DNA of 64,000 nt from Auanema rhodensis (taxonomy: Eukaryota > Animalia > Nematoda): positions 9,796,001 to 9,860,000 of the forward strand of contig OZ059895.1 of the NCBI GenBank assembly GCA_964057225.1, in the 5' to 3' direction. Under the pieces are notes generated by a model. It was not told the origin of the DNA, made no database searches, and saw only the letters and a list, made by a program, of their open reading frames with translations. Position 1 is the stretch's first letter. Each line of letters opens with the position of its first letter. Shown piece by piece: positions 1 to 27,224 of the stretch. The position numbers and the translations under genes were made by a program.

Positions 1-182
1 ATAAACCAGTAGTTGTTGAACCTTCATCTTAACTTTACTGTTTCTATCTATTTCCTATCGAAACAAACATTGTTCAAACACTATGCAACTATGAAACCTT
101 TTTTAATTTATTGTATTTGGAGCTCATAAAATTTGATATCATTGAGGGATCCAGATGAAACGTGGAAAATTACATAACTAAC

Positions 183-330
183 ATGAAATTGGAAAAAAAA
201 GTATAACGAGGATAAGTAGGTAAACCATTGAATATCAGATATTTTCGCTTACGACCATACCACGTTGAAAGTACGCCATACAGCTGATATTCAATTTTAT
301 CTCTTCCGTAACAAATGTTTTCAATTTTCA
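183..330. repeat. Imperfect inverted repeat (fold-back) centred on the 5S-like fragment, in every monomer
   Basis: ATTGAATATCAG (227-238) is the exact reverse complement of CTGATATTCAAT (284-295), with one mismatch in the commoner CTGATTTTCAAT variant. Outer pairings are GATAA (211-215)/TTATC (297-301) and TGAAATTGGAAAA (184-196)/TTTTCAATTTTCA (318-330). Confidence 0.7.
247..279 (+). pseudogene. 5'-terminal 33-nt fragment of 5S rRNA embedded in the monomer (representative copy; recurs once per monomer, e.g. 647, 1047, 1448); not a complete 5S gene
   Basis: GCTTACGACCATACCACGTTGAAAGTACGCCAT versus the C. elegans 5S 5' end as I recall it, GCTTACGACCATATCACGTTGAATGCACGCCAT, gives 30/33 identity (31/33 for the ATATCAC variant at 1448-1480). 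Similarity stops before the conserved C(C/T)CGTCCGATC and box A region. The comparison is from memory, not a search. Confidence 0.8.
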
Positions 331-3300
331 AGCAGTTTTACTTAAATAGCTCAACCAAAGGAGAGCAAATTATCTTCAATCTTATTTCTATATTACAGTT
401 ATAAACCAGTAGTTGTTGAACCTTCATCTTAACTTTACTGTTTCTATCTATTTCCTATCGAAACAAACATTGTTCAAACACCATGCAACTATAAAACCTT
501 TTTTAATTTATTGTATTTGGAGCTCATAAAATTTGATATCATTGAGGGATCCAGATGAAACGTGGAAAATTACATAACTAACATGAAATTTGAAAAAAAA
601 CTATAACGGGGATAAGTATGTTAACGATTGAATATCAGATATTTTCGCTTACGACCATACCACGTTGAAAGTACGCCATACAGCTGATTTTCAATTTTAT
701 CTCTTCCGTAACATATGTTTCCAATTTTCAAGCAGTTTTACTTAAATAGCTCAACCAAAGGAAAGCAAATTATCTTCAATCTCATTTCTATATTACAGTT
801 ATAAACCAGTAGTTGTTGAACCTTCATCTTAACTTTACTGTTTCTATCTATTTCCTATCGAAACAAACATTGTTCAAACACTATGCAACTATGGAACCTT
901 TTTTAATTTATTGTATTTGGAGCTCATAAAATTTGATATCATTGAGGGATCCAGATGAAACGTGGAAAATTACATAACTAACATGAAATTGGAAAAAAAA
1001 GTATAACGAGGATAAGTAGGTAAACCATTGAATATCAGATATTTTCGCTTACGACCATACCACGTTGAAAGTACGCCATACAGCTGATTTTCAATTTTAT
1101 CTCTTCCGTAACATATGTTTTCAATTTTCAAGCAGTTTTACTTAAATAGCTAAACCAAAGGAGAGCAAATTATCTTCAATCTTATTTCTATATTACAGTT
1201 ATAAACCAGTAGTTGTTGAACCTTCATCTTAACTTTACTGTTTCTATCTATTTCCTATCAAAACAAACATTGTTTAAACACTATGCAACTATGAAACCCT
1301 TTTTAATTTATTGTATTTGGAGCTCATAAGAATTGATATCATTGAGGGATCCAGATGAAACGTGGAAAGTTACGTAACTAACATGAAATTGGAAAAAAAA
1401 ACTATAACGGGGATAAGTATGTTAACGATTGAATATCAGATATTTTCGCTTACGACCATATCACGTTGAAAGTACGCCATACAGCTGATTTTCAATTTTA
1501 TCTCTTCCGTAACATATGTTTTCAATTTTCAAGCAGTTTTACTTAAATAGCTAAACCAAAGGAGAGCAAATTATCTTCAATCTTATTTCTATATTACAGT
1601 TATAAACCAGTAGTTGTTGAACCTTCATCTTAACTTTACTGTTTCTATCTATTTCCTATCAAAACAAACATTGTTTAAACACTATGCAACTATGAAACCT
1701 TTTTTAATTTATTCTATTTGGAGCTCATAAAATTTGATATCATTGAGGGATCCAGATAAAACGTGGAAAATTACATAACTAACATGAAATTGGAAAAAAA
1801 AGTATAACGAGGATAAGTAGGTAAACCATTGAATATCAGATATTTTCGCTTACGACCATACCACGTTGAAAGTACGCCATACAGCTGATTTTCAATTTTA
1901 TCTTTTCCGTAACAAATGTTTTCAATTTTCAAGCACTTTTACTTAGATAGCTCAACCAAAGGAAAGCAAATTATCTTCAATTTTATTTCTATATTACAGT
2001 TATAAACCAGTAGGTAATGAAACCTTCATATTGAATTTACTGTTTCTATCTATTTCCTATTAAAACAAACATTGTTCAAACACTATGCAACTATGAAACC
2101 TTCTTTAGTTTATTGTATTTGGAGCTCATAAAATTTGATATCATCGAGGGATCCAGATGGAACGTGGAAAATTACATAACTAAAATGAAATTGGAAAAAA
2201 AAGTATAACAAGGATAAGTATGTTAACGATTGAATATCAGATATTTTCGCTTACGACCATACCACGTTGAAAGTACGCCATACAGCTGATTTTCAATTTT
2301 ATCTTTTCCGTAACAAATGTTTTCAATTTTCAAGCACTTTTACTTAGATAGCTCAACCAAAGGAAAGCAAATTATCTTCAATTTTATTTTTATATTACAG
2401 TTATAAACCAGTAGGTAATGAAACCTTCATCTTGAATTTACTGTTTCTATCTATTTCCTATCAAAACAAACATTGTTCAAACACTATGCAACTATGAAAA
2501 CTTTTTTAATTTATTGTATTTGGAGCTCATAAAATTTGATATCATCGAGGGATCCAGATGGAACGTGGAAAATTACATAACTAACATGAAATTGGAAAAA
2601 AAGTATAACGAGGATAAGTATGTTAACGATTGAATATCAGATATTTTCGCTTACGACCATACCACGTTGAAAGTATGCCATACAGCTGATTTTCAATTTT
2701 ATCTTTTCCGTAACAAATGTTTTCAATTTTCAAGCACTTTTACTTAGATAGCTCAACCAAAGGAAAGCAAATTATCTTCAATCTTATTTCTATATTACAG
2801 TTATAAACCAGTAGTTGTTGAACCTTCATCTTAACTTTACTGTTTCTATCTATTTCCTATCAAAACATCATTGTTTAAACACTATACAACTGTGAAACCT
2901 TTTTTAATTTATTGTATTTGGAGCTCATAATATTTGATATCATCGAGGAATCCAGATGGAAAGTGGAAAATTACATAACTAACATGAAATTGGAAAAAAA
3001 AGTATAACAAGGAGAAGTATGTTAACGATTGAATATCAGATATTTTCGCTTACGACCATACCACGTTAAAAGTACGCCATACAGCTGATTTTCAATTTTA
3101 TCTCTTCCGTAACAAATGTTTTCAATTTTCAAGCACTTTTACTTAGATAGCTCAACCAAAGAAAAGCAAATTATCTTCAATTCTTTTTCTATATTACAGT
3201 TATAAACCAGTAGATAATGAACCTTCATCTCGACTTTACTGTTTCTATCTATTTCCTATCGAAACAAACATTGTTTAAACACTATACAACTGTGAAACCT

Positions 3301-3399
3301 TTTTTAATTTATTGTATTTGTAGCTCATAAAATTTTATATCATCGAGGGATCCAGATGGAAGGTGGAAAATTACATAACTAACATGAAATTTGAAAAAA

Positions 3400-6300
3400 A
3401 ACTATAACGGGGATAAGTATGTTAACGATTGAATATCAGATATTTTTGCTTACGACCATACCACGTTGAAAGTACGCCATACAGCTGATATTCAATTTTA
3501 TCTCTTCCGTAACAAATCTTTTCAATTTTCAAGCACTTTTACTTGGATAGCTCAACCAAAGGAAAGCAAATTATCTTCAATCTCATTTCTATATTACAGT
3601 TATAAACCAGTAGTTGTTGAACCTTCATCTTAACTTCACTGTTTCTATCTATTTCCTATCGAAACAAACATTGTTCAAACACTATGCAACTATGAAACCT
3701 TTTTAAATTTATTGTATTTGGAGCTCATAAAATTTGATATCATTGAGGGATCCAGATGAAACGTGGAAAATTACATAACTAACATGAAATTGGAAAAAAA
3801 AGTATAACGAGGATAAGTAGGTAAACCATTGAATATCAGATATTTTCGCTTACGACCATACCACGTTGAAAGTACGCCATACAGCTGATATTCAATTTTA
3901 TCTCTTCCGTAACATATGTTTTCAATTTTCAAGCAGTTTTACTTAAATAGCTCAACCAAAGGAGAGCAAATTATCTTCAATCTTATTTCCATATTACAGT
4001 TATAAACCAGTAGTTGTTGAACCTTCATCTTAACTTTACTGTTTCTATCTATTTCCTATCAAAACAAAGATTGTTTAAACACTATGCAACTATGAAACCT
4101 TTTTTAATTTATTGTATTTGGAGCTCATAAGAATTGATTTCATTGAGGGATACAGATGAAACGTGGAAAGTTACATAACTAACATGAAATTTGAAAAAAA
4201 ACTATAACGGGGATAAGTATGTTAACGATTGAATATCAGATATTTTCGCTAACGACCATACCACGTTGAAAGTACGCCATACAGCTGATTTTCAATTTTA
4301 TGTTTTCCGTAACAAATGTTTTCAATTTTCAAGCACTTTTACTTAGATAGCTCAACCAAAGGAAAGCAAATTATCTTCAATTTTATTTCTATATTACAGT
4401 TATAAACCAGTAGATAATGAACCTTCATCTCGACTTTACTGTTTCTATCCATTTCCTATCGAAACAAACATTGTTTAAACACTATACAACTGTGAAACCT
4501 TTTTTAATTTATTGTATTTGTAGCTCATAAAATTTGATATCATCGAGGGATCCAGATGGAACGTGGAAAATTACATTACTAACATGAAATTGGAAAAAAA
4601 AGTATAACAAGGATAAGTATGTTAACGATTGAATATCAGATATTTTCGCTTACGACCATACCACGTTGAAAGTACGCCATACAGCTGATTTTCAATTTTA
4701 TCTTTTCCGTAACAAATGTTTTCAATTTTCAAGCACTTTTACTTAGATAGCTCAACCAAAGGAAAGCAAATTATCTTCAATTTTATTTTTATATTACAGT
4801 TATAAACCAGTAGGTAATGAAACCTTCATCTTGAATTTACTGTTTCTATCTATTTCCTATCAAAACAAACATTGTTCAAACACTATGCAACTATGAAACC
4901 TTTTTAAATTTATTGTATTTGGAGCTCATAAAATTTGATATCATCGAGGGATCCAGATGGAACGTGGAAAATTACATAACTAAAATGAAATTGGAAAAAA
5001 AAGTATAACAAGGATAAGTATGTTAACGATTGAATATCAGATATTTTCGCTTACGACCATACCACGTTGAAAGTACGCCATACAGCTGATTTTCAATTTT
5101 ATCTTTTCCGTAACAAATGTTTTCAATTTTCAAGCACTTTTACTTAGATAGCTCAACCAAAGGAAAGCAAATTATCTTCAACTTTATTTCTATATTACAG
5201 TTATAAACCAGTAGGTAATGAAACCTTCATCTTGAATTTACTGTTTCTATCTATTTCCTATCAAAACAAACATTGTTCAAACACTATGCAACTATGAAAC
5301 CTTTTTTAATTTATTGTATTTGGAGCTCATAAAATTTGATATCATCGAGGGATCCAGATGGAACGTGGAAAATTACATAACTAAAATGAAATTGGAAAAA
5401 AAAGTATAACAAGGATAAGTATGTTAACGATTGAATATCAGATATTTTCGCTTACGACCATACCACGTTGAAAGTACGCCATACAGCTGATTTTCAATTT
5501 TATCTTTTCCGTAACAAATGTTTTCACTTTTCAAGCACTTTTACTTAGATAGCTCAACCAAAGGAAAGCAAATTATCTTCAATTTTATTTCTATATTACA
5601 GTTATAAACCAGTAGGTAATGAAACCTTCATATTGAATTTACTGTTTCTATCTATTTCCTATTAAAACAAACATTGTTCAAACACTATGCAACTATGAAA
5701 CCTTTTTTAGTTTATTGTATTTGGAGCTCATAAAATTTGATATCATCGAGGGATCCAGATGGAACGTGGAAAATTACATAACTAAAATGAAAATGGAAAA
5801 AAAAGTATAACAAGGATAAGTATGTTAACGATTGAATATCAGATATTTTCGCTTACGACCATACCACGCTGAAAATACGCCATACAGCTGATTTTCAATC
5901 TTATCTTTTCCGTAACAAATGTTTTCAATTTTCAAGCACTTTTACTTAGATAGCTCAACCAAAGGAAAGCAAATTATCTTCAATTTTATTTCTATATTAC
6001 AGTTATAAACCAGTAGGTAATGAAACCTTCATCTTGAATTTACTGTTTCTATCTATTTCCTATCAAAACATCATTGTTTAAACACTATACAACTGTGAAA
6101 CCTTTTTTAATTTATTGTATTTGGAGCTCATAAAATTTTATATCATCGAGGGATCCAGATGGAAGGTGGAAAATTACATAACTAACATGAAATTGGAAAA
6201 AAAACTATAACGGGGATAAGTATGTTAACGATTGAATATCAGATATTTTCGCTTACGAGCATACCACGTTGAAAGTACGCCATACAGCTGATATTCAATT

Positions 6301-9300
6301 TTATCTCTTCCGTAACAAATCTTTTCAATTTTCAAGCACTTTTACTTGGATAGCTCAACCAAAGGAAAGCAAATTATCTTCAATCTCATTTCTATATTAC
6401 AGTTATAAACCAGTAGTTGTTGAACCTTCATCTTAACTTCACTGTTTCTATCTATTTCCTATCAAAACAAACATTGTTCAAACACTATGCAACTATGAAA
6501 CCTTTTTAAATTTATTGTATTTGGAGCTCATAAAATTTGATATCATTGAGGGATCCAGATGAAACGTGGAAAATTACATAACTAACATGAAATTGGAAAA
6601 AAAAGTATAACGAGGATAAGTAGGTAAACCATTGAATATCAGATATTTTCGCTTACGACCATACCACGTTGAAAGTACGCCATACAGCTGATATTCAATT
6701 TTATCTCTTCCGTAACATATGTTTTCAATTTTCAAGCAGTTTTACTTAAATAGCTCAACCAAAGGAGAGCAAATTATCTTCAATCTTATTTCCATATTAC
6801 AGTTATAAACCAGTAGTTGTTGAACCTTCATCTTAACTTTACTGTTTCTATCTATTTCCTATCAAAACAAACATTGTTTAAACACTATGCAACTATGAAA
6901 CCTTTTTTAATTTATTGTATTTGGAGCTCATAAGAATTGATTTCATTGAGGGATACAGATGAAACGTGGAAAGTTACATAACTAACATGAAATTGGAAAA
7001 AAAACTATAACGGGGATAAGTATGTTAACGATTGAATATCAGATATTTTCGCTTACGACCATATCGCGTTGAAAGTACGCCATACAGCTGATTTTCAATT
7101 TTATCTCTTCCGTAACATATGTTTTCAATTTTCAAGCAGTTTTACTTAAATAGCTCAACCAAAGGAGAGCAAATTATCTTCAATCTTATTTCTATATTAC
7201 AGTTATAAACCAGTAGATAATGAACCTTCATCTTGACTTTACTGTTTCTATCCATTTCCTATTGAAACAAACATTGTTTAAACACTGTACAACTGTGAAA
7301 CCTTTTTTAATTTATTGTATTTGGAGCTCATAAAATTTGATATCATCGAGGGATCCAGATGAAACGTGGAAAATTACATAACTAACATGAAATTTGAAAA
7401 AAAACTATAACGGGGATAAGTATGTTAACGATTGAATATCAGATATTTTCGCTAACGACCATACCACGTTGAAAGTACGCCATACAGCTGATTTTCAATT
7501 TTATGTTTTCCGTAACAAATGTTTTCAATTTTCAAGCACTTTTACTTAGATAGCTCAACCAAAGGAAAGCAAATTATCTTCAATTTTATTTCTATATTAC
7601 AGTTATAAACCAGTAGATAATGAACCTTCATCTCGACTTTACTGTTTCTATCTATTTCCTATCGAAACAAACATTGTTTAAACACTATACAACTGTGAAA
7701 CCTTTTTTAATTTATTGTATTTGTAGCTCATAAAATTTGATATCATCGAGGGATCCAGATGGAACGTGGAAAATTACATTACTAACATGAAATTGGAAAA
7801 AAAAAGTATAACAAGGATAAGTATGTTAACGATTGAATATCAGATATTTTCGCTTACGACCATACCACGTTGAAAGTACGCCATACAGCTGATTTTCAAT
7901 TTTATCTTTTCCGTAACAAATGTTTTCAATTTTCAAGCACTTTTACTTAGATAGCTCAACCAAAGGAAAGCAAATTATCTTCAATTTTATTTTTATATTA
8001 CAGTTATAAACCAGTAGGTAATGAAACCTTCATCTTGAATTTACTGTTTCTATCTATTTCCTATCAAAACAAACATTGTTCAAACACTATGCAACTATGA
8101 AACCTTTTTAAATTTATTGTATTTGGAGCTCATAAAATTTGATATCATCGAGGGATCCAGATGGAACGTGGAAAATTACATAACTAAAATGAAATTGGAA
8201 AAAAAAGTATAACAAGGATAAGTATGTTAACGATTGAATATCAGATATTTTCGCTTACGACCATACCACGTTGAAAGTACGCCATACAGCTGATTTTCAA
8301 TTTTATCTTTTCCGTAACAAATGTTTTCAATTTTCAAGCACTTTTACTTAGATAGCTCAACCAAAGGAAAGCAAATTATCTTCAACTTTATTTCTATATT
8401 ACAGTTATAAACCAGTAGGTAATGAAACCTTCATCTTGAATTTACTGTTTCTATCTATTTCCTATCAAAACAAACATTGTTCAAACACTATGCAACTATG
8501 AAACCTTTTTTAATTTATTGTATTTGGAGCTCATAAAATTTGATATCATCGAGGGATCCAGATGGAACGTGGAAAATTACATAACTAAAATGAAATTGGA
8601 AAAAAAAGTATAACAAGGATAAGTATGTTAACGATTGAATATCAGATATTTTCGCTTACGACCATACCACGTTGAAAGTACGCCATACAGCTGATTTTCA
8701 ATTTTATCTTTTCCGTAACAAATGTTTTCACTTTTCAAGCACTTTTACTTAGATAGCTCAACCAAAGGAAAGCAAATTATCTTCAATTTTATTTCTATAT
8801 TACAGTTATAAACCAGTAGGTAATAAAACCTTCATATTGAATTTACTGTTTCTATCTATTTCCTATTAAAACAAACATTGTTCAAACACTATGCAACTAT
8901 GAAACCTTTTTTAGTTTATTGTATTTGGAGCTCATAAAATTTGATATCATCGAGGGATCCAGATGGAACGTGGAAAATTACATAACTAAAATGAAAATGG
9001 AAAAAAAAGTATAACAAGGATAAGTATGTTAACGATTGAATATCAGATATTTTCGCTTACGACCATACCACGTTGAAAGTACGCCATACAGCTGATTTTC
9101 AATCTTATCTTTTCCGTAACAAATGTTTTCAATTTTCAAGCACTTTTACTTAGATAGCTCAACCAAAGGAAAGCAAATTATCTTCAATTTTATTTCTATA
9201 TTACAGTTATAAACCAGTAGGTAATGAAACCTTCATCTTGAATTTACTGTTTCTATCTATTTCCTATCAAAACATCATTGTTTAAACACTATACAACTGT

Positions 9301-9410
9301 GAAACCTTTTTTAATTTATTGTATTTGGAGCTCATAAAATTTTATATCATCGAGGGATCCAGATGGAAGGTGGAAAATTACATAACTAACATGAAATTGG
9401 AAAAAAAAGT
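3400..9410. repeat. Nested 7/8-monomer duplication (~3400-6200 vs ~6200-9410), itself repeated in the second 12.4-kb unit
   Basis: The same ordered variants occur in both blocks: ACTTGGAT, AACTTCACT, GGATACAG, GCTAACG, CATTACT, CAACTTT, TTCACTTT, GAAAATGG. Confidence 0.85.
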
Positions 9411-12400
9411 ATAACAAGGAGAAGTATGTTAACGATTGAACTTCAGATATTTTCGCTTACGACCATACCACGTTAAAAGTACGCCATACAGCTGATTTTC
9501 AATTTTATCTCTTCCGTAACAAATCTTTTCAATTTTCAAGCACTTTTACTTAGATAGCTCAACCAAAGAAAAGCAAATTATCTTCAATTCTTTTTCTATA
9601 TTACAGTTATAAACCAGTAGATAATGAACCTTCATCTTGACTTTACTGTTTCTATCCATTTCCTATCGAAACAAACATTGTTTAAACACTGTACAACTGT
9701 GAAACCTTTTTTAATTTATTGTATTTGGAGCTCATAAAATTTGATATCATCGAGGGATCCAGATGGAACGTGGAAAATTACATAACTAACATGAAATTGG
9801 AAAAAAAAGTATAACAAGGATAAGTATGTTAACGATTGAATATCAGATATTTTCGCTTACGACCATACCACGTTGAAAGTACGCCATACAGCTGATTTTC
9901 AATTTTATCTTTTCCGTAACAAATGTTTTCAATTTTCAAGCACTTTTACTTAGATAGCTCAACCAAAGGAAAGCAAATTATCTTCAATTTTATTTCTATA
10001 TTACAGTTATAAACCAGTAGGTAATGAAACCTTCATCTTGAATTTACTGTTTCTATCTATTTCCTATCGAAACAAACATTGTTCAAACACTATGCAACTA
10101 TGAAACCTTTTTTAATTTATTGTATTTGGAGCTCATAAAATTTGATATCATCGAGGGATCCAGATGGAACGTGGAAAATTACATAACTAACATGAAATTG
10201 GAAAAAAAAGTATAACAAGGATAAGTATGTTAACGATTGAATATCAGATATTTTCGCTTACGACCATATCACGTTGAAAGTACGCCATACAGCTGATTTT
10301 CAATTTTATCTCTTCCGTAACATATGTTTTCAATTTTCAAGCAGTTTTACTTAAATAGCTCAACCAAAGGAAAGCAAATTATCTTCAATCTCATTTCTAT
10401 ATTACAGTTATAAACCAGTAGTTGTTGAACCTTCATCTTAACTTTACTGTTTCTATCTATTTCCTATCGAAACAAACATTGTTTAAACACTATACAACTG
10501 TGAAACCTTTTTTAATTTATTGTATTTGGAGCTCATAAAATTTGATATCATCGAGGGATCCAGATGGAACGTGGAAAATTACATAACTAACATGAAATTG
10601 GAGAAAAAAACTATAACGAGGATAAGTAGGTAAACCATTGAATATCAGATATTTTCGCTTACGACCATACCACGTTGAAAGTACGCCATGCAACTGATTT
10701 TCAATTTTATCTTTTCCGTAACAAATGTTTTCAATTTTCAAACAGTTTTACTTAGATAGCTCAACCGAGGGAAAGCAAATTATCTTCAATTTTATTTCTA
10801 TATTACAGTTATAAACCAGTAGGTAATGAACCTTCATCTTGAATTTACTTATTCTATCCATTTCCTATCAAAACAAACATTGTTCAAACACTATGCAACT
10901 ATGAAACCTTTTTTAATTTATTGTATTTGGAGCTCATAAGATTTGATATCATCGAGGGATCCAGATGAAACGTGGAAAATTACATAACTAACATGAAATT
11001 GGAAAAAAAAGTATAACGAGGATAAGTAGGTAAACCATTGAATATCAGATATTTTCGCTTACGACCATACCACGTTGAAAGTACGCCATACAGCTGATTT
11101 TCAATTTTATCTCTTCCGTAACATATGTTTTCAATTTTCAAGCAGTTTTACTTAAATAGCTAAACCAAAGGAGAGCAAATTATCTTCAATCTTATTTCTA
11201 TATTACAGTTATAAACCAGTAGTTGTTGAACCTTCATCTTAACTTTACTGTTTCTATCTATTTCCTATCGAAACAAACATTGTTCAAACACTATGCAACT
11301 ATGAAACCTTTTTTAATTTATTGTATTTGGAGCTCATAAAATTTGATATCATTGAGGGATCCAGATGAAACGTGGAAAATTACATAACTAACATGAAATT
11401 GGAAAAAAAAGTATAACGAGGATAAGTAGGTAAACCATTGAATATCAGATATTTTCGCTTACGACCATACCACGTTGAAAGTACGCCATACAGCTGATAT
11501 TCAATTTTATCTCTTCCGTAACAAATGTTTTCAATTTTCAAGCAGTTTTACTTAAATAGCTCAACCAAAGGAGAGCAAATTATCTTCAATCTTATTTCTA
11601 TATTACAGTTATAAACCAGTAGTTGTTGAACCTTCATCTTAACTTTACTGTTTCTATCTATTTCCTATCGAAACAAACATTGTTCAAACACCATGCAACT
11701 ATAAAACCTTTTTTAATTTATTGTATTTGGAGCTCATAAAATTTGATATCATTGAGGGATCCAGATGAAACGTGGAAAATTACATAACTAACATGAAATT
11801 TGAAAAAAAACTATAACGGGGATAAGTATGTTAACGATTGAATATCAGATATTTTCGCTTACGACCATACCACGTTGAAAGTACGCCATACAGCTGATTT
11901 TCAATTTTATCTCTTCCGTAACATATGTTTCCAATTTCAAGCAGTTTTACTTAAATAGCTCAACCAAAGGAAAGCAAATTATCTTCAATCTCATTTCTAT
12001 ATTACAGTTATAAACCAGTAGTTGTTGAACCTTCATCTTAACTTTACTGTTTCTATCTATTTCCTATCGAAACAAACATTGTTCAAACACTATGCAACTA
12101 TGAAACCTTTTTTAATTTATTGTATTTGGAGCTCATAAAATTTGATATCATTGAGGGATCCAGATGAAACGTGGAAAATTACATAACTAACATGAAATTG
12201 GAAAAAAAAGTATAACGAGGATAAGTAGGTAAACCATTGAATATCAGATATTTTCGCTTACGACCATACCACGTTGAAAGTACGCCATACAGCTGATTTT
12301 CAATTTTATCTCTTCCGTAACATATGTTTTCAATTTTCAAGCAGTTTTACTTAAATAGCTAAACCAAAGGAGAGCAAATTATCTTCAATCTTATTTCTAT

Positions 12401-15400
12401 ATTACAGTTATAAACCAGTAGTTGTTGAACCTTCATCTTAACTTTACTGTTTCTATCTATTTCCTATCGAAACAAACATTGTTCAAACACTATGCAACTA
12501 TGAAACCTTTTTTAATTTATTGTATTTGGAGCTCATAAAATTTGATATCATTGAGGGATCCAGATGAAACGTGGAAAATTACATAACTAACATGAAATTG
12601 GAAAAAAAAGTATAACGAGGATAAGTAGGTAAACCATTGAATATCAGATATTTTCGCTTACGACCATACCACGTTGAAAGTACGCCATACAGCTGATATT
12701 CAATTTTATCTCTTCCGTAACAAATGTTTTCAATTTTCAAGCAGTTTTACTTAAATAGCTCAACCAAAGGAGAGCAAATTATCTTCAATCTTATTTCTAT
12801 ATTACAGTTATAAACCAGTAGTTGTTGAACCTTCATCTTAACTTTACTGTTTCTATCTATTTCCTATCGAAACAAACATTGTTCAAACACCATGCAACTA
12901 TAAAACCTTTTTTAATTTATTGTATTTGGAGCTCATAAAATTTGATATCATTGAGGGATCCAGATGAAACGTGGAAAATTACATAACTAACATGAAATTT
13001 GAAAAAAAACTATAACGGGGATAAGTATGTTAACGATTGAATATCAGATATTTTCGCTTACGACCATACCACGTTGAAAGTACGCCATACAGCTGATTTT
13101 CAATTTTATCTCTTCCGTAACATATGTTTCCAATTTTCAAGCAGTTTTACTTAAATAGCTCAACCAAAGGAAAGCAAATTATCTTCAATCTCATTTCTAT
13201 ATTACAGTTATAAACCAGTAGTTGTTGAACCTTCATCTTAACTTTACTGTTTCTATCTATTTCCTATCGAAACAAACATTGTTCAAACACTATGCAACTA
13301 TGAAACCTTTTTTAATTTATTGTATTTGGAGCTCATAAAATTTGATATCATTGAGGGATCCAGATGAAACGTGGAAAATTACATAACTAACATGAAATTG
13401 GAAAAAAAAGTATAACGAGGATAAGTAGGTAAACCATTGAATATCAGATATTTTCGCTTACGACCATACCACGTTGAAAGTACGCCATACAGCTGATTTT
13501 CAATTTTATCTCTTCCGTAACATATGTTTTCAATTTTCAAGCAGTTTTACTTAAATAGCTAAACCAAAGGAGAGCAAATTATCTTCAATCTTATTTCTAT
13601 ATTACAGTTATAAACCAGTAGTTGTTGAACCTTCATCTTAACTTTACTGTTTCTATCTATTTCCTATCAAAACAAACATTGTTTAAACACTATGCAACTA
13701 TGAAACCCTTTTTAATTTATTGTATTTGGAGCTCATAAGAATTGATATCATTGAGGGATCCAGATGAAACGTGGAAAGTTACGTAACTAACATGAAATTG
13801 GAAAAAAAAACTATAACGGGGATAAGTATGTTAACGATTGAATATCAGATATTTTCGCTTACGACCATATCACGTTGAAAGTACGCCATACAGCTGATTT
13901 TCAATTTTATCTCTTCCGTAACATATGTTTTCAATTTTCAAGCAGTTTTACTTAAATAGCTAAACCAAAGGAGAGCAAATTATCTTCAATCTTATTTCTA
14001 TATTACAGTTATAAACCAGTAGTTGTTGAACCTTCATCTTAACTTTACTGTTTCTATCTATTTCCTATCAAAACAAACATTGTTTAAACACTATGCAACT
14101 ATGAAACCTTTTTTAATTTATTCTATTTGGAGCTCATAAAATTTGATATCATTGAGGGATCCAGATAAAACGTGGAAAATTACATAACTAACATGAAATT
14201 GGAAAAAAAAGTATAACGAGGATAAGTAGGTAAACCATTGAATATCAGATATTTTCGCTTACGACCATACCACGTTGAAAGTACGCCATACAGCTGATTT
14301 TCAATTTTATCTTTTCCGTAACAAATGTTTTCAATTTTCAAGCACTTTTACTTAGATAGCTCAACCAAAGGAAAGCAAATTATCTTCAATTTTATTTCTA
14401 TATTACAGTTATAAACCAGTAGGTAATGAAACCTTCATATTGAATTTACTGTTTCTATCTATTTCCTATTAAAACAAACATTGTTCAAACACTATGCAAC
14501 TATGAAACCTTCTTTAGTTTATTGTATTTGGAGCTCATAAAATTTGATATCATCGAGGGATCCAGATGGAACGTGGAAAATTACATAACTAAAATGAAAT
14601 TGGAAAAAAAAGTATAACAAGGATAAGTATGTTAACGATTGAATATCAGATATTTTCGCTTACGACCATACCACGTTGAAAGTACGCCATACAGCTGATT
14701 TTCAATTTTATCTTTTCCGTAACAAATGTTTTCAATTTTCAAGCACTTTTACTTAGATAGCTCAACCAAAGGAAAGCAAATTATCTTCAATTTTATTTTT
14801 ATATTACAGTTATAAACCAGTAGGTAATGAAACCTTCATCTTGAATTTACTGTTTCTATCTATTTCCTATCAAAACAAACATTGTTGAAACACTATGCAA
14901 CTATGAAAACTTTTTTAATTTATTGTATTTGGAGCTCATAAAATTTGATATCATCGAGGGATCCAGATGGAACGTGGAAAATTACATAACTAACATGAAA
15001 TTGGAAAAAAAGTATAACGAGGATAAGTATGTTAACGATTGAATATCAGATATTTTCGCTTACGACCATACCACGTTGAAAGTATGCCATACAGCTGATT
15101 TTCAATTTTATCTTTTCCGTAACAAATGTTTTCAATTTTCAAGCACTTTTACTTAGATAGCTCAACCAAAGGAAAGCAAATTATCTTCAATCTTATTTCT
15201 ATATTACAGTTATAAACCAGTAGTTGTTGAACCTTCATCTTAACTTTACTGTTTCTATCTATTTCCTATCAAAACATCATTGTTTAAACACTATACAACT
15301 GTGAAACCTTTTTTAATTTATTGTATTTGGAGCTCATAATATTTGATATCATCGAGGAATCCAGATGGAAAGTGGAAAATTACATAACTAACATGAAATT

Positions 15401-18400
15401 GGAAAAAAAAGTATAACAAGGAGAAGTATGTTAACGATTGAATATCAGATATTTTCGCTTACGACCATACCACGTTAAAAGTACGCCATACAGCTGATTT
15501 TCAATTTTATCTCTTCCGTAACAAATGTTTTCAATTTTCAAGCACTTTTACTTAGATAGCTCAACCAAAGAAAAGCAAATTATCTTCAATTCTTTTTCTA
15601 TATTACAGTTATAAACCAGTAGATAATGAACCTTCATCTCGACTTTACTGTTTCTATCTATTTCCTATCGAAACAAACATTGTTTAAACACTATACAACT
15701 GTGAAACCTTTTTTAATTTATTGTATTTGTAGCTCATAAAATTTTATATCATCGAGGGATCCAGATGGAAGGTGGAAAATTACATAACTAACATGAAATT
15801 TGAAAAAAAACTATAACGGGGATAAGTATGTTAACGATTGAATATCAGATATTTTTGCTTACGACCATACCACGTTGAAAGTACGCCATACAGCTGATAT
15901 TCAATTTTATCTCTTCCGTAACAAATCTTTTCAATTTTCAAGCACTTTTACTTGGATAGCTCAACCAAAGGAAAGCAAATTATCTTCAATCTCATTTCTA
16001 TATTACAGTTATAAACCAGTAGTTGTTGAACCTTCATCTTAACTTCACTGTTTCTATCTATTTCCTATCGAAACAAACATTGTTCAAACACTATGCAACT
16101 ATGAAACCTTTTTAAATTTATTGTATTTGGAGCTCATAAAATTTGATATCATTGAGGGATCCAGATGAAACGTGGAAAATTACATAACTAACATGAAATT
16201 GGAAAAAAAAGTATAACGAGGATAAGTAGGTAAACCATTGAATATCAGATATTTTCGCTTACGACCATACCACGTTGAAAGTACGCCATACAGCTGATAT
16301 TCAATTTTATCTCTTCCGTAACATATGTTTTCAATTTTCAAGCAGTTTTACTTAAATAGCTCAACCAAAGGAGAGCAAATTATCTTCAATCTTATTTCCA
16401 TATTACAGTTATAAACCAGTAGTTGTTGAACCTTCATCTTAACTTTACTGTTTCTATCTATTTCCTATCAAAACAAAGATTGTTTAAACACTATGCAACT
16501 ATGAAACCTTTTTTAATTTATTGTATTTGGAGCTCATAAGAATTGATTTCATTGAGGGATACAGATGAAACGTGGAAAGTTACATAACTAACATGAAATT
16601 TGAAAAAAAACTATAACGGGGATAAGTATGTTAACGATTGAATATCAGATATTTTCGCTAACGACCATACCACGTTGAAAGTACGCCATACAGCTGATTT
16701 TCAATTTTATGTTTTCCGTAACAAATGTTTTCAATTTTCAAGCACTTTTACTTAGATAGCTCAACCAAAGGAAAGCAAATTATCTTCAATTTTATTTCTA
16801 TATTACAGTTATAAACCAGTAGATAATGAACCTTCATCTCGACTTTACTGTTTCTATCCATTTCCTATCGAAACAAACATTGTTTAAACACTATACAACT
16901 GTGAAACCTTTTTTAATTTATTGTATTTGTAGCTCATAAAATTTGATATCATCGAGGGATCCAGATGGAACGTGGAAAATTACATTACTAACATGAAATT
17001 GGAAAAAAAAGTATAACAAGGATAAGTATGTTAACGATTGAATATCAGATATTTTCGCTTACGACCATACCACGTTGAAAGTACGCCATACAGCTGATTT
17101 TCAATTTTATCTTTTCCGTAACAAATGTTTTCAATTTTCAAGCACTTTTACTTAGATAGCTCAACCAAAGGAAAGCAAATTATCTTCAATTTTATTTTTA
17201 TATTACAGTTATAAACCAGTAGGTAATGAAACCTTCATCTTGAATTTACTGTTTCTATCTATTTCCTATCAAAACAAACATTGTTCAAACACTATGCAAC
17301 TATGAAACCTTTTTAAATTTATTGTATTTGGAGCTCATAAAATTTGATATCATCGAGGGATCCAGATGGAACGTGGAAAATTACATAACTAAAATGAAAT
17401 TGGAAAAAAAAGTATAACAAGGATAAGTATGTTAACGATTGAATATCAGATATTTTCGCTTACGACCATACCACGTTGAAAGTACGCCATACAGCTGATT
17501 TTCAATTTTATCTTTTCCGTAACAAATGTTTTCAATTTTCAAGCACTTTTACTTAGATAGCTCAACCAAAGGAAAGCAAATTATCTTCAACTTTATTTCT
17601 ATATTACAGTTATAAACCAGTAGGTAATGAAACCTTCATCTTGAATTTACTGTTTCTATCTATTTCCTATCAAAACAAACATTGTTCAAACACTATGCAA
17701 CTATGAAACCTTTTTTAATTTATTGTATTTGGAGCTCATAAAATTTGATATCATCGAGGGATCCAGATGGAACGTGGAAAATTACATAACTAAAATGAAA
17801 TTGGAAAAAAAAGTATAACAAGGATAAGTATGTTAACGATTGAATATCAGATATTTTCGCTTACGACCATACCACGTTGAAAGTACGCCATACAGCTGAT
17901 TTTCAATTTTATCTTTTCCGTAACAAATGTTTTCACTTTTCAAGCACTTTTACTTAGATAGCTCAACCAAAGGAAAGCAAATTATCTTCAATTTTATTTC
18001 TATATTACAGTTATAAACCAGTAGGTAATGAAACCTTCATATTGAATTTACTGTTTCTATCTATTTCCTATTAAAACAAACATTGTTCAAACACTATGCA
18101 ACTATGAAACCTTTTTTAGTTTATTGTATTTGGAGCTCATAAAATTTGATATCATCGAGGGATCCAGATGGAACGTGGAAAATTACATAACTAAAATGAA
18201 AATGGAAAAAAAAGTATAACAAGGATAAGTATGTTAACGATTGAATATCAGATATTTTCGCTTACGACCATACCACGCTGAAAATACGCCATACAGCTGA
18301 TTTTCAATCTTATCTTTTCCGTAACAAATGTTTTCAATTTTCAAGCACTTTTACTTAGATAGCTCAACCAAAGGAAAGCAAATTATCTTCAATTTTATTT

Positions 18401-21400
18401 CTATATTACAGTTATAAACCAGTAGGTAATGAAACCTTCATCTTGAATTTACTGTTTCTATCTATTTCCTATCAAAACATCATTGTTTAAACACTATACA
18501 ACTGTGAAACCTTTTTTAATTTATTGTATTTGGAGCTCATAAAATTTTATATCATCGAGGGATCCAGATGGAAGGTGGAAAATTACATAACTAACATGAA
18601 ATTGGAAAAAAAACTATAACGGGGATAAGTATGTTAACGATTGAATATCAGATATTTTCGCTTACGAGCATACCACGTTGAAAGTACGCCATACAGCTGA
18701 TATTCAATTTTATCTCTTCCGTAACAAATCTTTTCAATTTTCAAGCACTTTTACTTGGATAGCTCAACCAAAGGAAAGCAAATTATCTTCAATCTCATTT
18801 CTATATTACAGTTATAAACCAGTAGTTGTTGAACCTTCATCTTAACTTCACTGTTTCTATCTATTTCCTATCAAAACAAACATTGTTCAAACACTATGCA
18901 ACTATGAAACCTTTTTAAATTTATTGTATTTGGAGCTCATAAAATTTGATATCATTGAGGGATCCAGATGAAACGTGGAAAATTACATAACTAACATGAA
19001 ATTGGAAAAAAAAGTATAACGAGGATAAGTAGGTAAACCATTGAATATCAGATATTTTCGCTTACGACCATACCACGTTGAAAGTACGCCATACAGCTGA
19101 TATTCAATTTTATCTCTTCCGTAACATATGTTTTCAATTTTCAAGCAGTTTTACTTAAATAGCTCAACCAAAGGAGAGCAAATTATCTTCAATCTTATTT
19201 CCATATTACAGTTATAAACCAGTAGTTGTTGAACCTTCATCTTAACTTTACTGTTTCTATCTATTTCCTATCAAAACAAACATTGTTTAAACACTATGCA
19301 ACTATGAAACCTTTTTTAATTTATTGTATTTGGAGCTCATAAGAATTGATTTCATTGAGGGATACAGATGAAACGTGGAAAGTTACATAACTAACATGAA
19401 ATTGGAAAAAAAACTATAACGGGGATAAGTATGTTAACGATTGAATATCAGATATTTTCGCTTACGACCATATCGCGTTGAAAGTACGCCATACAGCTGA
19501 TTTTCAATTTTATCTCTTCCGTAACATATGTTTTCAATTTTCAAGCAGTTTTACTTAAATAGCTCAACCAAAGGAGAGCAAATTATCTTCAATCTTATTT
19601 CTATATTACAGTTATAAACCAGTAGATAATGAACCTTCATCTTGACTTTACTGTTTCTATCCATTTCCTATTGAAACAAACATTGTTTAAACACTGTACA
19701 ACTGTGAAACCTTTTTTAATTTATTGTATTTGGAGCTCATAAAATTTGATATCATCGAGGGATCCAGATGAAACGTGGAAAATTACATAACTAACATGAA
19801 ATTTGAAAAAAAACTATAACGGGGATAAGTATGTTAACGATTGAATATCAGATATTTTCGCTAACGACCATACCACGTTGAAAGTACGCCATACAGCTGA
19901 TTTTCAATTTTATGTTTTCCGTAACAAATGTTTTCAATTTTCAAGCACTTTTACTTAGATAGCTCAACCAAAGGAAAGCAAATTATCTTCAATTTTATTT
20001 CTATATTACAGTTATAAACCAGTAGATAATGAACCTTCATCTCGACTTTACTGTTTCTATCTATTTCCTATCGAAACAAACATTGTTTAAACACTATACA
20101 ACTGTGAAACCTTTTTTAATTTATTGTATTTGTAGCTCATAAAATTTGATATCATCGAGGGATCCAGATGGAACGTGGAAAATTACATTACTAACATGAA
20201 ATTGGAAAAAAAAAGTATAACAAGGATAAGTATGTTAACGATTGAATATCAGATATTTTCGCTTACGACCATACCACGTTGAAAGTACGCCATACAGCTG
20301 ATTTTCAATTTTATCTTTTCCGTAACAAATGTTTTCAATTTTCAAGCACTTTTACTTAGATAGCTCAACCAAAGGAAAGCAAATTATCTTCAATTTTATT
20401 TTTATATTACAGTTATAAACCAGTAGGTAATGAAACCTTCATCTTGAATTTACTGTTTCTATCTATTTCCTATCAAAACAAACATTGTTCAAACACTATG
20501 CAACTATGAAACCTTTTTAAATTTATTGTATTTGGAGCTCATAAAATTTGATATCATCGAGGGATCCAGATGGAACGTGGAAAATTACATAACTAAAATG
20601 AAATTGGAAAAAAAAGTATAACAAGGATAAGTATGTTAACGATTGAATATCAGATATTTTCGCTTACGACCATACCACGTTGAAAGTACGCCATACAGCT
20701 GATTTTCAATTTTATCTTTTCCGTAACAAATGTTTTCAATTTTCAAGCACTTTTACTTAGATAGCTCAACCAAAGGAAAGCAAATTATCTTCAACTTTAT
20801 TTCTATATTACAGTTATAAACCAGTAGGTAATGAAACCTTCATCTTGAATTTACTGTTTCTATCTATTTCCTATCAAAACAAACATTGTTCAAACACTAT
20901 GCAACTATGAAACCTTTTTTAATTTATTGTATTTGGAGCTCATAAAATTTGATATCATCGAGGGATCCAGATGGAACGTGGAAAATTACATAACTAAAAT
21001 GAAATTGGAAAAAAAAGTATAACAAGGATAAGTATGTTAACGATTGAATATCAGATATTTTCGCTTACGACCATACCACGTTGAAAGTACGCCATACAGC
21101 TGATTTTCAATTTTATCTTTTCCGTAACAAATGTTTTCACTTTTCAAGCACTTTTACTTAGATAGCTCAACCAAAGGAAAGCAAATTATCTTCAATTTTA
21201 TTTCTATATTACAGTTATAAACCAGTAGGTAATAAAACCTTCATATTGAATTTACTGTTTCTATCTATTTCCTATTAAAACAAACATTGTTCAAACACTA
21301 TGCAACTATGAAACCTTTTTTAGTTTATTGTATTTGGAGCTCATAAAATTTGATATCATCGAGGGATCCAGATGGAACGTGGAAAATTACATAACTAAAA

Positions 21401-23629
21401 TGAAAATGGAAAAAAAAGTATAACAAGGATAAGTATGTTAACGATTGAATATCAGATATTTTCGCTTACGACCATACCACGTTGAAAGTACGCCATACAG
21501 CTGATTTTCAATCTTATCTTTTCCGTAACAAATGTTTTCAATTTTCAAGCACTTTTACTTAGATAGCTCAACCAAAGGAAAGCAAATTATCTTCAATTTT
21601 ATTTCTATATTACAGTTATAAACCAGTAGGTAATGAAACCTTCATCTTGAATTTACTGTTTCTATCTATTTCCTATCAAAACATCATTGTTTAAACACTA
21701 TACAACTGTGAAACCTTTTTTAATTTATTGTATTTGGAGCTCATAAAATTTTATATCATCGAGGGATCCAGATGGAAGGTGGAAAATTACATAACTAACA
21801 TGAAATTGGAAAAAAAAGTATAACAAGGAGAAGTATGTTAACGATTGAACTTCAGATATTTTCGCTTACGACCATACCACGTTAAAAGTACGCCATACAG
21901 CTGATTTTCAATTTTATCTCTTCCGTAACAAATCTTTTCAATTTTCAAGCACTTTTACTTAGATAGCTCAACCAAAGAAAAGCAAATTATCTTCAATTCT
22001 TTTTCTATATTACAGTTATAAACCAGTAGATAATGAACCTTCATCTTGACTTTACTGTTTCTATCCATTTCCTATCGAAACAAACATTGTTTAAACACTG
22101 TACAACTGTGAAACCTTTTTTAATTTATTGTATTTGGAGCTCATAAAATTTGATATCATCGAGGGATCCAGATGGAACGTGGAAAATTACATAACTAACA
22201 TGAAATTGGAAAAAAAAGTATAACAAGGATAAGTATGTTAACGATTGAATATCAGATATTTTCGCTTACGACCATACCACGTTGAAAGTACGCCATACAG
22301 CTGATTTTCAATTTTATCTTTTCCGTAACAAATGTTTTCAATTTTCAAGCACTTTTACTTAGATAGCTCAACCAAAGGAAAGCAAATTATCTTCAATTTT
22401 ATTTCTATATTACAGTTATAAACCAGTAGGTAATGAAACCTTCATCTTGAATTTACTGTTTCTATCTATTTCCTATCGAAACAAACATTGTTCAAACACT
22501 ATGCAACTATGAAACCTTTTTTAATTTATTGTATTTGGAGCTCATAAAATTTGATATCATCGAGGGATCCAGATGGAACGTGGAAAATTACATAACTAAC
22601 ATGAAATTGGAAAAAAAAGTATAACAAGGATAAGTATGTTAACGATTGAATATCAGATATTTTCGCTTACGACCATATCACGTTGAAAGTACGCCATACA
22701 GCTGATTTTCAATTTTATCTCTTCCGTAACATATGTTTTCAATTTTCAAGCAGTTTTACTTAAATAGCTCAACCAAAGGAAAGCAAATTATCTTCAATCT
22801 CATTTCTATATTACAGTTATAAACCAGTAGTTGTTGAACCTTCATCTTAACTTTACTGTTTCTATCTATTTCCTATCGAAACAAACATTGTTTAAACACT
22901 ATACAACTGTGAAACCTTTTTTAATTTATTGTATTTGGAGCTCATAAAATTTGATATCATCGAGGGATCCAGATGGAACGTGGAAAATTACATAACTAAC
23001 ATGAAATTGGAGAAAAAAACTATAACGAGGATAAGTAGGTAAACCATTGAATATCAGATATTTTCGCTTACGACCATACCACGTTGAAAGTACGCCATGC
23101 AACTGATTTTCAATTTTATCTTTTCCGTAACAAATGTTTTCAATTTTCAAACAGTTTTACTTAGATAGCTCAACCGAGGGAAAGCAAATTATCTTCAATT
23201 TTATTTCTATATTACAGTTATAAACCAGTAGGTAATGAACCTTCATCTTGAATTTACTTATTCTATCCATTTCCTATCAAAACAAACATTGTTCAAACAC
23301 TATGCAACTATGAAACCTTTTTTAATTTATTGTATTTGGAGCTCATAAGATTTGATATCATCGAGGGATCCAGATGGAAGGTGGAAAATTACATAACTAA
23401 CATGAAATTGGAAAAAAAACCATAACGGGGATAAGTATGTTAACGATTGAATATCAGATATTTTCGCTTACGACCATATCACGTTGAAAGTACGCCATAC
23501 AGCTGATTTTCAATTTTATCTCTTCCGTAACATATGTTTTCAATTTTCAAGCAGTTTTACTTAAATAGCTCAACCAAAGGAAAGCAAATTATCTTCAATC
23601 TCATTTCTATATTACAGTTATAAACCAGT

Positions 23630-26600
23630 AGTTGTTGAACCTTCATCTTAACTTTACTGTTTCTATCTATTTCCTATCGAAACAAACATTGTTTAAACAC
23701 TATGCAACTATGAAACCTTTTTTAATTTATTGTATTTGGAGCTCATAAGAATTGATATCATTGAGGGATCCAGATGAAACGTGGAAAGTTACATAACTAA
23801 CATGAAATTGGAAAAAAAAACTATAACGGGGATAAGTATGTTAACGATTGAATTTCAGATATTTTCGCTTACGACCATATCACGTTGAAAGTACGCCATA
23901 CAGCTGATTTTCAATTTTATCTCTTCCGTAACATATGTTTTCAATTTTCAAGCAGTTTTACTTAAATAGCTCAACCAAAGGAGAGCAAATTATCTTCAAT
24001 CTTATTTCTATATTACAGTTATAAACCAGTAGTTGTTGAACCTTCATCTTAACTTTACTGTTTCTATCTATTTCCTATCAAAACAAACATTGTTTAAACA
24101 CTATGCAACTATGAAACCTTTTTTAATTTATTCTATTTGGAGCTCATAAAATTTGATATCATTGAGGGATCCAGATGAAACGTGGAAAATTACATAACTA
24201 ACATGAAATTGGAAAAAAAAGTATAACGAGGATAAGTAGGTAAACCATTGAATATCAGATATTTTCGCTTACGACCATACCACGTTGAAAGTACGCCATA
24301 CAGCTGATTTTCAATTTTATCTCTTCCGTAACAAATGTTTTCAATTTTCAAGCACTTTTACTTAGATAGCTCCACCAAAGGAAAGCAAATTATCTTCAAT
24401 TTTATTTCTATATTACAGTTATAAACCAGTAGATAATGAACCTTCATCTTGAATTTACTTATTCTATCTATTTCCTATCGAAACAAACATTGTTTAAACA
24501 CTATACAACTGTGAAACCTTTTTTAATTTATTGTATTTGGAGCTCATAAAATTTGATATCATCGAGGGATCCAGATGGAACGTGGAAAATTACATAACTA
24601 ACATGAAATTGGAGAAAAAAACTATAACGAGGATAAGTAGGTAAACCATTGAATATCAGATATTTTCGCTTACGACCATACCACGTTGAAAGTACGCCAT
24701 GCAACTGATTTTCAATTTTATCTTTTCCGTAACAAATGTTTTCAATTTTCAAACAGTTTTACTTAGATAGCTCAACCGAGGGAAAGCAAATTATCTTCAA
24801 TTTTATTTCTATATTACAGTTATAAACCAGTAGGTAATGAACCTTCATCTTGAATTTACTTATTCTATCCATTTCCTATCAAAACAAACATTGTTCAAAC
24901 ACTATGCAACTATGAAACCTTTTTTAATTTATTGTATTTGGAGCTCATAAGATTTGATATCATCGAGGGATCCAGATGGAAGGTGGAAAATTACATAACT
25001 AACATGAAATTGGAAAAAAAACCATAACGGGGATAAGTATGTTAACGATTGAATATCAGATATTTTCGCTTACGACCATACCACGTTAAAAGTACGCCAT
25101 ACAGCTGATTTTCAATTTTATCTCTTCCGTAACAAATCTTCTCAATTTTCAAGCAGTTCTACTTAGATAGCTCAACCAAAGGAGAGCAAATTATCTTCAA
25201 TCTTATTTCCATATTACAGTTATAAACCAGTAGTTGTTGAACCTTCATCTTAACTTTACTGTTTCTATCTATTTCCTATCAAAACAAACATTGTTTAAAC
25301 ACTATGCAACTATGAAACCTTTTTTAATTTATTGTATTTGGAGCTCATAAGAATTGATTTTCATTGAGGAATCCAGATGAAACGTGGAAAGTTACATAAC
25401 TAACATGAAATTGGAAAAAAAACTATAACGGGGATAAGTATGTTAACGATTGAATATCAGATATTTTCGCTTACGACCATACCACGTTGAAAGTACGCCA
25501 TACAGCTGATTTTCAATTTTATCTCTTCCGTAACATATGTTTTCAATTTTCAAGCAGTTTTACTTAAATAGCTCAACCAAAGGAAAGCAAATTATCTTCA
25601 ATCTCATTTCTATATTACAGTTATAAACCAGTAGTTGTTGAACCTTCATCTTAACTTTACTGTTTCTATCTATTTCCTATCGGAACAAACATTGTTCAAA
25701 CACTATGCAACTATGAAACCTTTTTTAATTTATTGTATTTGGAGCTCATAAAATTTGATATCATTGAGGGATCCAGATGAAACGTGGAAAATTACATAAC
25801 TAACATGAAATTGGAAAAAAAAGTATAACGAGGATAAGTAGGTAAACCATTGAATATCAGATATTTTCGCTTACGACCATACCACGTTGAAAGTACGCCA
25901 TACAGCTGATTTTCAATTTTATCTCTTCCGTAACATATGTTTTCAATTTTCAAGCAGTTTTACTTAAATAGTTCAACCAAAGGAGAGCAAATTATCTTCA
26001 ATCTCATTTCTATATTACAGTTATAAACCAGTAGTTGTTGAACCTTCATCTTAACTTTACTGTTTCTATCTATTTCCTATCGAAACAAACATTGTTTAAA
26101 CACTATGCAACTATGAAACCTTTTTTAATTTATTGTATTTGGAGCTCATAAGAATTGATATCATTGAGGGATCCAGATGAAACGTGGAAAGTTACATAAC
26201 TAACATGAAATTGGAAAAAAAAACTATAACGGGGATAAGTATGCTAACGATTGAATATCAGATATTTTCGCTTACGACCATATCACGTTGAAAGTACGCC
26301 ATACAGCTGATTTTCAATTTTTTCTCTTCCGTAACATATGTTTTCAAATTTCAAGCAGTTTTACTTAAATAGCTCAACCAAAGGAGAGCAAATTATCTTC
26401 AATCTTATTTCTATATTACAGTTATAAACCAGTAGTTGTTGAACCTTCATCTTAACTTTACTGTTTCTATCTATTTCCTATCAAAACAAACATTGTTTAA
26501 ACACTATGCAACTATGAAACCTTTTTTAATTTATTCTATTTGGAGCTCATAAAATTTGATATCATTGAGGGATCCAGATGAAACGTGGAAAATTACATAA

Positions 26601-27224
26601 CTAACATGAAATTGGAAAAAAAAGTATAACGAGGATAAGTAGGTAAACCATTGAATATCAGATATTTTCGCTTACGATCATACCACGTTCAAAGTACGCC
26701 ATACAGCTGATTTTCAATTTTATCTCTTCCGTAACAAATGTTTTCAATTTTCAAGCACTTTTACTTAGATAGCTCCACCAAAGGAAAGCAAATTATCTTC
26801 AATTTTATTTCTATATTACAGTTATAAACCAGTAGATAATGAACCTTCATCTTGAATTTACTTATTCTATCTATTTCCTATCGAAACAAACATTGTTTAA
26901 ACACTATACAACTGTGAAACCTTTTTTAATTTATTGTATTTGGAGCTCATAAAATTTGATATCATCGAGGGATCCAGATGGAACGTGGAAAATTACATAA
27001 CTAACATGAAATTGGAGAAAAAAACTATAACGAGGATAAGTAGGTAAACCATTGAATATCAGATATTTTCGCTTACGACCATACCACGTTGAAAGTACGC
27101 CATGCAACTGATTTTCAATTTTATCTTTTCCGTAACAAATGTTTTCAATTTTCAAACAGTTTTACTTAGATAGCTCAACCGAGGGAAAGCAAATTATCTT
27201 CAATTTTATTTCTATATTACAGTT
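23630..27224. repeat. Higher-order repeat with a ~2,403-bp (6-monomer) period
   Basis: Chance ORFs at 24528 and 26931 (offset 2403), with the same order of the TTCTATTTGG, GCTCCACC and GGAGAAAAAAA markers. Confidence 0.75.

Follow-up and report, generated by a model that had tools for sequence, protein, structure and literature searches.

The satellite DNA described here, from the nematode Auanema rhodensis, raises three linked questions: what is the short, GC-richer segment that recurs in the units of a long tandem array, how did it get there, and does it have a role? They are addressed in a window of 64 kb (i.e., the whole stretch of DNA that was analyzed), whose features are collected in Table 1.

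Table 1. Features of the satellite array; coordinates are window positions, unless the consensus monomer is indicated.
Feature	Position	Strand	Remarks
Tandem satellite array, 160 monomers of 399–402 bp	1..64000	+	Continues past both window ends
Representative monomer	1..400	+	~28% GC outside the 5S piece
5S rRNA nt 1–33 (5′ strands of helices I, II and III, with loops A and B)	247..279	+	Sense; recurs every 400/401 bp
Decayed fragment, 6 changes	49514..49546	+	Same variant at 53517 and 62728
Inverted repeat, left arm, 12 nt	227..238	+	8 nt upstream of 5S +1
Inverted repeat, right arm	284..295	+	4 nt past 5S nt 33; 11/12 complementary in most monomers
T4 runs	288–291 and 295–298 (consensus monomer)	+	+42 to +52 from the 5S start

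A homogeneous satellite with large duplicated blocks

The whole window consists of a single tandem satellite, for which Tandem Repeats Finder gives a period of 401 bp, 159.8 copies and 95% matches, and which is divided into 160 monomers with a spacing of 399–402 bp when anchored on two different motifs. The monomer consensus is 400 nt long, no open reading frame in it exceeds 53 aa, and it contains no credible Rfam match; weak matches to MIR2275, MESTIT1 and bxd (E 1–9) were discarded as noise, the first of them merely mirroring the inverted repeat of the monomer. Pairwise differences between monomers average 5.4% across the array. At a larger scale, window positions 1–25000 contain two copies, 0.6% divergent, of a block that spans 31 monomers (12.4 kb), an 11-monomer period appears in the middle of the window and a 33-monomer period in its last part, a pattern that points to recent growth by duplication of large blocks and not to a regular short higher-order repeat. 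The satellite is also found outside this assembly, its words reaching very high depth in DNA runs of three closely related organisms, and two satellite-specific 24-mers have zero matches in viral contigs.

Each monomer carries a BamHI site (GGATCC; window positions 150–155 in the first), so that a 400-bp ladder is expected on BamHI digestion. A search of the monomer for internal direct sub-repeats returned nothing useful. On the 3′ side of the GC-richer segment, consensus monomer positions 288–388 hold three copies of the 9-mer TTCAATTTT (291–299, 321–329 and 375–383), the first of which overlaps the right arm of the inverted repeat; short sub-repeats of an older origin may have left this trace.

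The recurrent segment is the 5′ end of 5S rRNA

The first-pass annotation of this DNA had pointed out a GC-richer island of 33 nt, repeated about 160 times, and had read it as the 5′ end of 5S ribosomal RNA (5S rRNA). The repetition is borne out: with up to three mismatches allowed, the 33-mer of positions 247–279 is found on the + strand in 157 of the 160 monomers, as against 0 expected from 100 shuffles, and 84 of its copies are exact. Its GC content is 48.5%, compared with 28.1% in the remaining monomer. The 33-mer exists in 20 variant forms, about half of the copies being altered and the changes being spread over all helix halves. The three monomers that fall beyond the three-mismatch cut (at 49514, 53517 and 62728) carry one common variant with six changes, whose occurrence at three sites indicates that it was copied by block duplication.

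A 19-nt core of the fragment was scanned against a metagenome collection, yielding 54 loci, 20 of which were passed to Rfam. In 19 of these 20 the core corresponds to positions 5–23 of 5S genes of family RF00001 (91.7–120 bits), and the twentieth (L015) has no 5S match in Rfam; over all 54 matches, eight lie outside 5S genes, close to what we estimate that chance alone would give for a 19-mer in a collection this large. The best locus (L019:662-780) is identical to the satellite fragment at 32/33 positions, and of the 14 positions that did not belong to the core used to fetch it, 13 agree. Past nt 33 this type of 5S gene continues in a way that we take to be that of nematode 5S, and the 5S of a further locus (L001) is presumably equal in sequence to the C. 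elegans gene. In three other, eukaryotic loci (L005, L007 and L027), Rfam places the 5S genes in dense clusters with U1, U4, U5 and U6 snRNA and tRNA genes.

Within the monomer, 5S profile HMMs find a match only at 247–279 (or 283), with nhmmer E-values of 1e-7 to 3e-9. No 5S match came out of ordinary Rfam scans of the satellite, whether at the gathering score or with E-values of up to 10, because the fragment holds only 5′ half-helices, which the covariance model is unable to score. A truncated-mode Infernal search with RF00001, proposed in the first-pass annotation as a check, was run on a stretch cut at 279, which lets Infernal treat the match as 3′-truncated; it did place 247–279 on model positions 1–33, but with 11.9 bits and an E-value of 2.9, which is not significant alone. 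A full-length 5S gene as represented by RF00001 (~120 nt, helices I–V, gathering score 38 bits) is absent from the satellite. Rfam alone, with this score and the empty ordinary scans, would be compatible with a chance likeness of an AT-poor island to 5S rRNA, an explanation to which we attach practically no credence: it is contradicted by the agreement at 32 of 33 positions with a verified 5S gene, by the nhmmer E-values, and by contigs of true 5S genes from related organisms that co-align over exactly these 33 nt. Chance likeness is refuted, and the island is indeed the 5′ end of 5S rRNA.

Abrupt edges and the 5S of the host lineage

Window positions 60–455 (396 letters) were compared with the contigs of one DNA run each from three related organisms and with those of an RNA run (X12). 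In runs X5 and X6, an increase in depth of up to about five-fold coincides exactly with 242–283, and no variant letter is listed in 247–279; contigs of true 5S genes thus overlie the fragment without listed difference, which implies that nt 1–33 of 5S rRNA in the host lineage are identical to the satellite consensus. At the left edge, three X6 contigs enter before 245 from an unrelated, GC-richer flank; true-5S contigs part from the satellite before 245–247, so that the fragment begins within 2 nt of the mature +1 position, as had been annotated. At the right edge, five X5 contigs diverge from the satellite after 279, and their next 30 letters are identical to nt 34–63 of an Rfam-verified 5S gene (L032). 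The fragment accordingly ends with nt 33 and does not reach the internal Pol III promoter, in agreement with the first reading. An anchored extension of the host 5S continuation beyond nt 33 into the satellite reached a score of 1, with 165 of 793 null positions as good.

The same comparison revealed rare deletion joints in run X1 (105>253, 107>256, 150>252 and 344>256), which cluster at window positions 252–256, corresponding to 5S nt 6–10, and in X5 and X6 there are loose ends ‘before 256’ that fall on the same few bases. Such clustering would mean that breaks recur at this place, or else that 5S sequence from nt 10 onward exists in a second context in the genome.

The remainder of the monomer

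In Xenopus-type 5S genes the internal control region is established at about +50 to +97. Its elements (box A, intermediate element and box C) were not recovered in the monomer, where neither nhmmer nor Smith–Waterman comparison detected significant likeness to 5S nt 34–119. With nhmmer, no further 5S likeness appears in the monomer at E up to 100. In Smith–Waterman alignments of the other 367 nt with 5S nt 34–119 of five 5S genes, nine of ten comparisons gave the mean score of dinucleotide shuffles; the remaining one, on the minus strand and with L019, lies above the shuffle mean (6 of 300 shuffles as good) and is read as chance, being one among ten tests. Inspection by eye shows collinear matches downstream of the fragment, i.e., a 7-mer of 5S nt 51–57, a box-C-like stretch of 16 nt resembling nt 68–83, and a hexamer like the 5S 3′ end located exactly 120 nt from +1, which reach p of about 0.04–0.09 against some references. 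When alignments were chained with cheap gap extension over the downstream 141 nt, between 21 and 285 of 500 shuffles were as good (best p ~0.04 before correction, 15 tests). A full gene might have left these weak matches behind; as evidence for a gene body that survives in decayed form 3′ of the fragment they were nevertheless dropped, local and chained alignments to the five 5S genes being no better than shuffles.

Spacer sequence was likewise sought. The monomer with its 33-mer masked, compared with 205 kb of the 54 metagenomic 5S loci, gave a best E-value of 0.18, and the upstream flank in the satellite is unlike the 30 nt upstream of true 5S genes in organism C (run X6). Two statements of the first-pass annotation are therefore supported: that the fragment sits in otherwise unlike sequence, no likeness having been detected to the 5S gene body, to these 30 nt or to the spacers of the 54 loci, and that the monomer is not a uniformly decayed 5S rDNA unit, since an identity of 33/33 in the fragment beside chance-level identity elsewhere is incompatible with uniform decay.

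A non-uniform history has to be considered, in which the whole monomer would come from a 5S gene and its spacer, the body past nt 33 having been deleted, replaced or scrambled and the spacer having diverged beyond recognition. In three contigs of organism C the satellite is followed to window position 427, after which 25 letters correspond to 5S nt ~65–89 with two changes, indicating a related repeat where satellite-like sequence abuts a mid-5S piece; monomer positions 28–52, in register with this piece, are identical to it at 11 of 25 positions (9 of 400 offsets as good). The weak collinear matches within the 120-nt span would also fit such a rearranged array, as would the passages cited here on satellites of this kind, which name 5SHindIII of Hoplias, PcP190 and a satellite of the Plantago B chromosome (PMC12692304, PMC11202950, PMC11675491). 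The sharp step from 33/33 to chance-level identity, the unlike 30 nt upstream of the true 5S genes of organism C and the lack of spacer likeness to the closest 5S loci argue against it, and we regard this history as rather unlikely.

Variation, fold-back structure and possible function

The first-pass annotation had described the fragment as a captured ‘cargo’, a term that implies a role. Divergence from the consensus per site is 2.0% in the fragment versus 3.5% in the monomer, which places it at rank 59 of 400 among 33-nt windows; several other stretches of the monomer are more uniform, and the region 227–300 as a whole is among its less variable parts. The fragment thus varies about like the rest of the monomer, and mutated versions of it have been spread by block duplication, so that the implied role finds no backing in these data. 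Across the three organisms, no variant at a share of at least 10% is listed in 247–279, whereas the other 363 nt contain 27 variable places. The expectation for the fragment is 2.4 variants and the probability of observing none is ~0.08, but the contigs of true 5S genes add depth there and dilute variant shares, and the absence of listed variants is for this reason partly an artefact. Polymorphisms common to the three organisms indicate, moreover, that they are too close for a test of cross-species conservation. In these tests, which have low power, there is no sign of selection on the fragment, and a lack of constraint inside one homogenized array argues in turn only weakly against function.

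The best inverted repeat of the monomer, with arms of 12 nt that are complementary at 11 of 12 positions, brackets the fragment. Complementarity of this degree is reached at only 13 of 400 loop positions, all of them belonging to this one repeat, and the bracketing has p of about 0.03. Folding of 86 nt gives z of about −2.6 as DNA or RNA, and of 131 nt a weak z of −1.8. The association between inverted repeat and fragment is real but modest.

These features could be taken to mean that the fragment is a functional module: it would be retained for an interaction of satellite transcripts, in sense or antisense orientation, with 5S rRNA or the rRNA-directed small-RNA machinery, or else for the binding of a factor to the DNA or to its fold-back. 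Its location in the loop of the inverted repeat, the reduced variability of 227–300 and the lack of listed variants would agree with this, and the T-runs 42–52 nt after +1 would be predicted to end a short Pol III transcript. However, the internal promoter is absent, the fragment is no conservation outlier, half of its copies are altered in all helix halves with even a six-change copy propagated, and the lack of listed variants is in part explained by true-5S depth. The RNA run X12, the sole one compared, has no contigs on window positions 60–455, a weak argument in view of its tiny size (20 million letters of contigs). The 5S-matching small RNAs and the landing site for 5S-derived RNAs envisaged in the first-pass annotation are conjectural. 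A functional module is, on balance, improbable. Still further from likely, in our judgement, is that nt 1–33 in the fold-back loop act as a hook, the 5S-identical or 5S-complementary tag of satellite transcripts feeding or attracting the nematode antisense-rRNA small-RNA or nuclear RNAi pathway, or titrating a 5S-binding factor; were this so, the array would be marked for silencing, or for programmed elimination if the species has it.

Probable origin of the fragment

The reading that we consider probable is that the fragment is a dead, promoter-less piece of the host 5S (nt 1–33), which entered the founder monomer once and was carried along passively as the array was amplified. This single entry into the ancestral monomer may have taken place in two ways. 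The slightly favored one is capture, in which a short piece of 5S would have been taken up as filler at a break, at the center of a small inverted repeat in an AT-rich ancestral unit; the preference stems from the coincidence of the left edge with the 5′ end of the RNA, from the abruptness of both edges and from flanks unrelated to 5S. The captured piece would most simply be cDNA of the very abundant 5S rRNA, again in view of the left edge. Nearly as likely, a 5S array could have been rearranged and have left a truncated copy of the gene in the founder monomer, and such an origin at the DNA level would fit the X6 contigs in which satellite-like sequence is joined at 427 to a mid-5S piece. Under either origin, the fragment is unable to act as a type 1 Pol III gene. 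The 400-bp unit would then have multiplied through unequal exchange and the duplication of blocks, and the perfect consensus of the fragment would reflect youth and homogenization of the array, not selection.

Comparison with known systems

We file this array as a further 5S-derived satellite, unusual for how little of the gene is kept. It shares with such satellites a homogeneous head-to-tail organization (160 monomers, 95% matches), and its homology to the 5S transcribed region is confined to nt 1–33. Such satellites are on record for hyloid frogs (PcP190, in which a conserved stretch of 120 bp resembles the transcribed region as a whole; PMC11675491), for a fish, Hoplias malabaricus (5SHindIII-DNA; Martins et al. 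2006), and for the B chromosome of Plantago lagopus (Kumke et al. 2016), the latter two as cited in PMC12692304 and PMC11202950. As far as these accounts go, all have in common with the present array a long tandem organization and, in every monomer, 5S-descended sequence beside non-5S sequence. In contrast with PcP190 as described there, nt 1–33 alone are recognizable here, and the array further differs from the fish, frog and plant satellites of these accounts in lacking the internal control region, in showing no detected spacer homology and in its nematode host. No 5S-derived satellite of a nematode is described in the literature searched, four words of the monomer are absent from the supplement of the Meloidogyne satellitome, and the related papers mention no 5S satellite. 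Few 5S-derived satellites are known, and with this array a nematode joins their hosts.

This has a practical side, since ~160 copies of a 5S 5′ tag per 64 kb will attract multi-mapping 5S and small-RNA reads as well as 5S probes, and the satellite should therefore be masked in annotation, rRNA filtering and small-RNA analyses of this genome.

Short pieces of abundant RNA genes can be placed in unrelated DNA by filler or templated insertions at repaired double-strand breaks and by the formation of chimeric retrocopies through template switching onto abundant small RNAs (e.g., U6/L1 chimeras). The fragment resembles these in being a short, abrupt-edged piece of an abundant-RNA gene in unrelated DNA, with a left edge at the RNA 5′ end as for a cDNA run to the end of its template. 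In the monomer, however, no poly(A), target-site duplication or other hallmark could be found, and the event itself would have preceded amplification. 5S-derived SINEs (SINE3 type) and Cassandra elements, for their part, occur at scattered sites and are transcribed from the 5S internal promoter, which they have retained. The satellite shares with them the presence of 5S-derived sequence at high copy outside 5S rDNA, but it is strictly tandem in the window and devoid of the promoter, and is neither a 5S-SINE nor a Cassandra-type element. The 5S sequence of Cassandra, a TRIM element, lies in its LTRs according to the paper that cites the original description (Kalendar et al. 2008, cited in PMC11202950).

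Among nematodes, a parallel is offered by MelSat01 of Meloidogyne, a satellite built of the SL1b spliced-leader gene; this gene is complete, conserved and transcribed at a moderate level, and the gene part of the unit is less variable (PMC9673304). Both are nematode satellites with the sequence of a small-RNA gene in each monomer; however, while MelSat01 contains a complete gene, the present satellite carries a truncated piece without excess conservation, and it shows that even a very small, sharply delimited part of an abundant RNA gene can become fixed in a satellite monomer.
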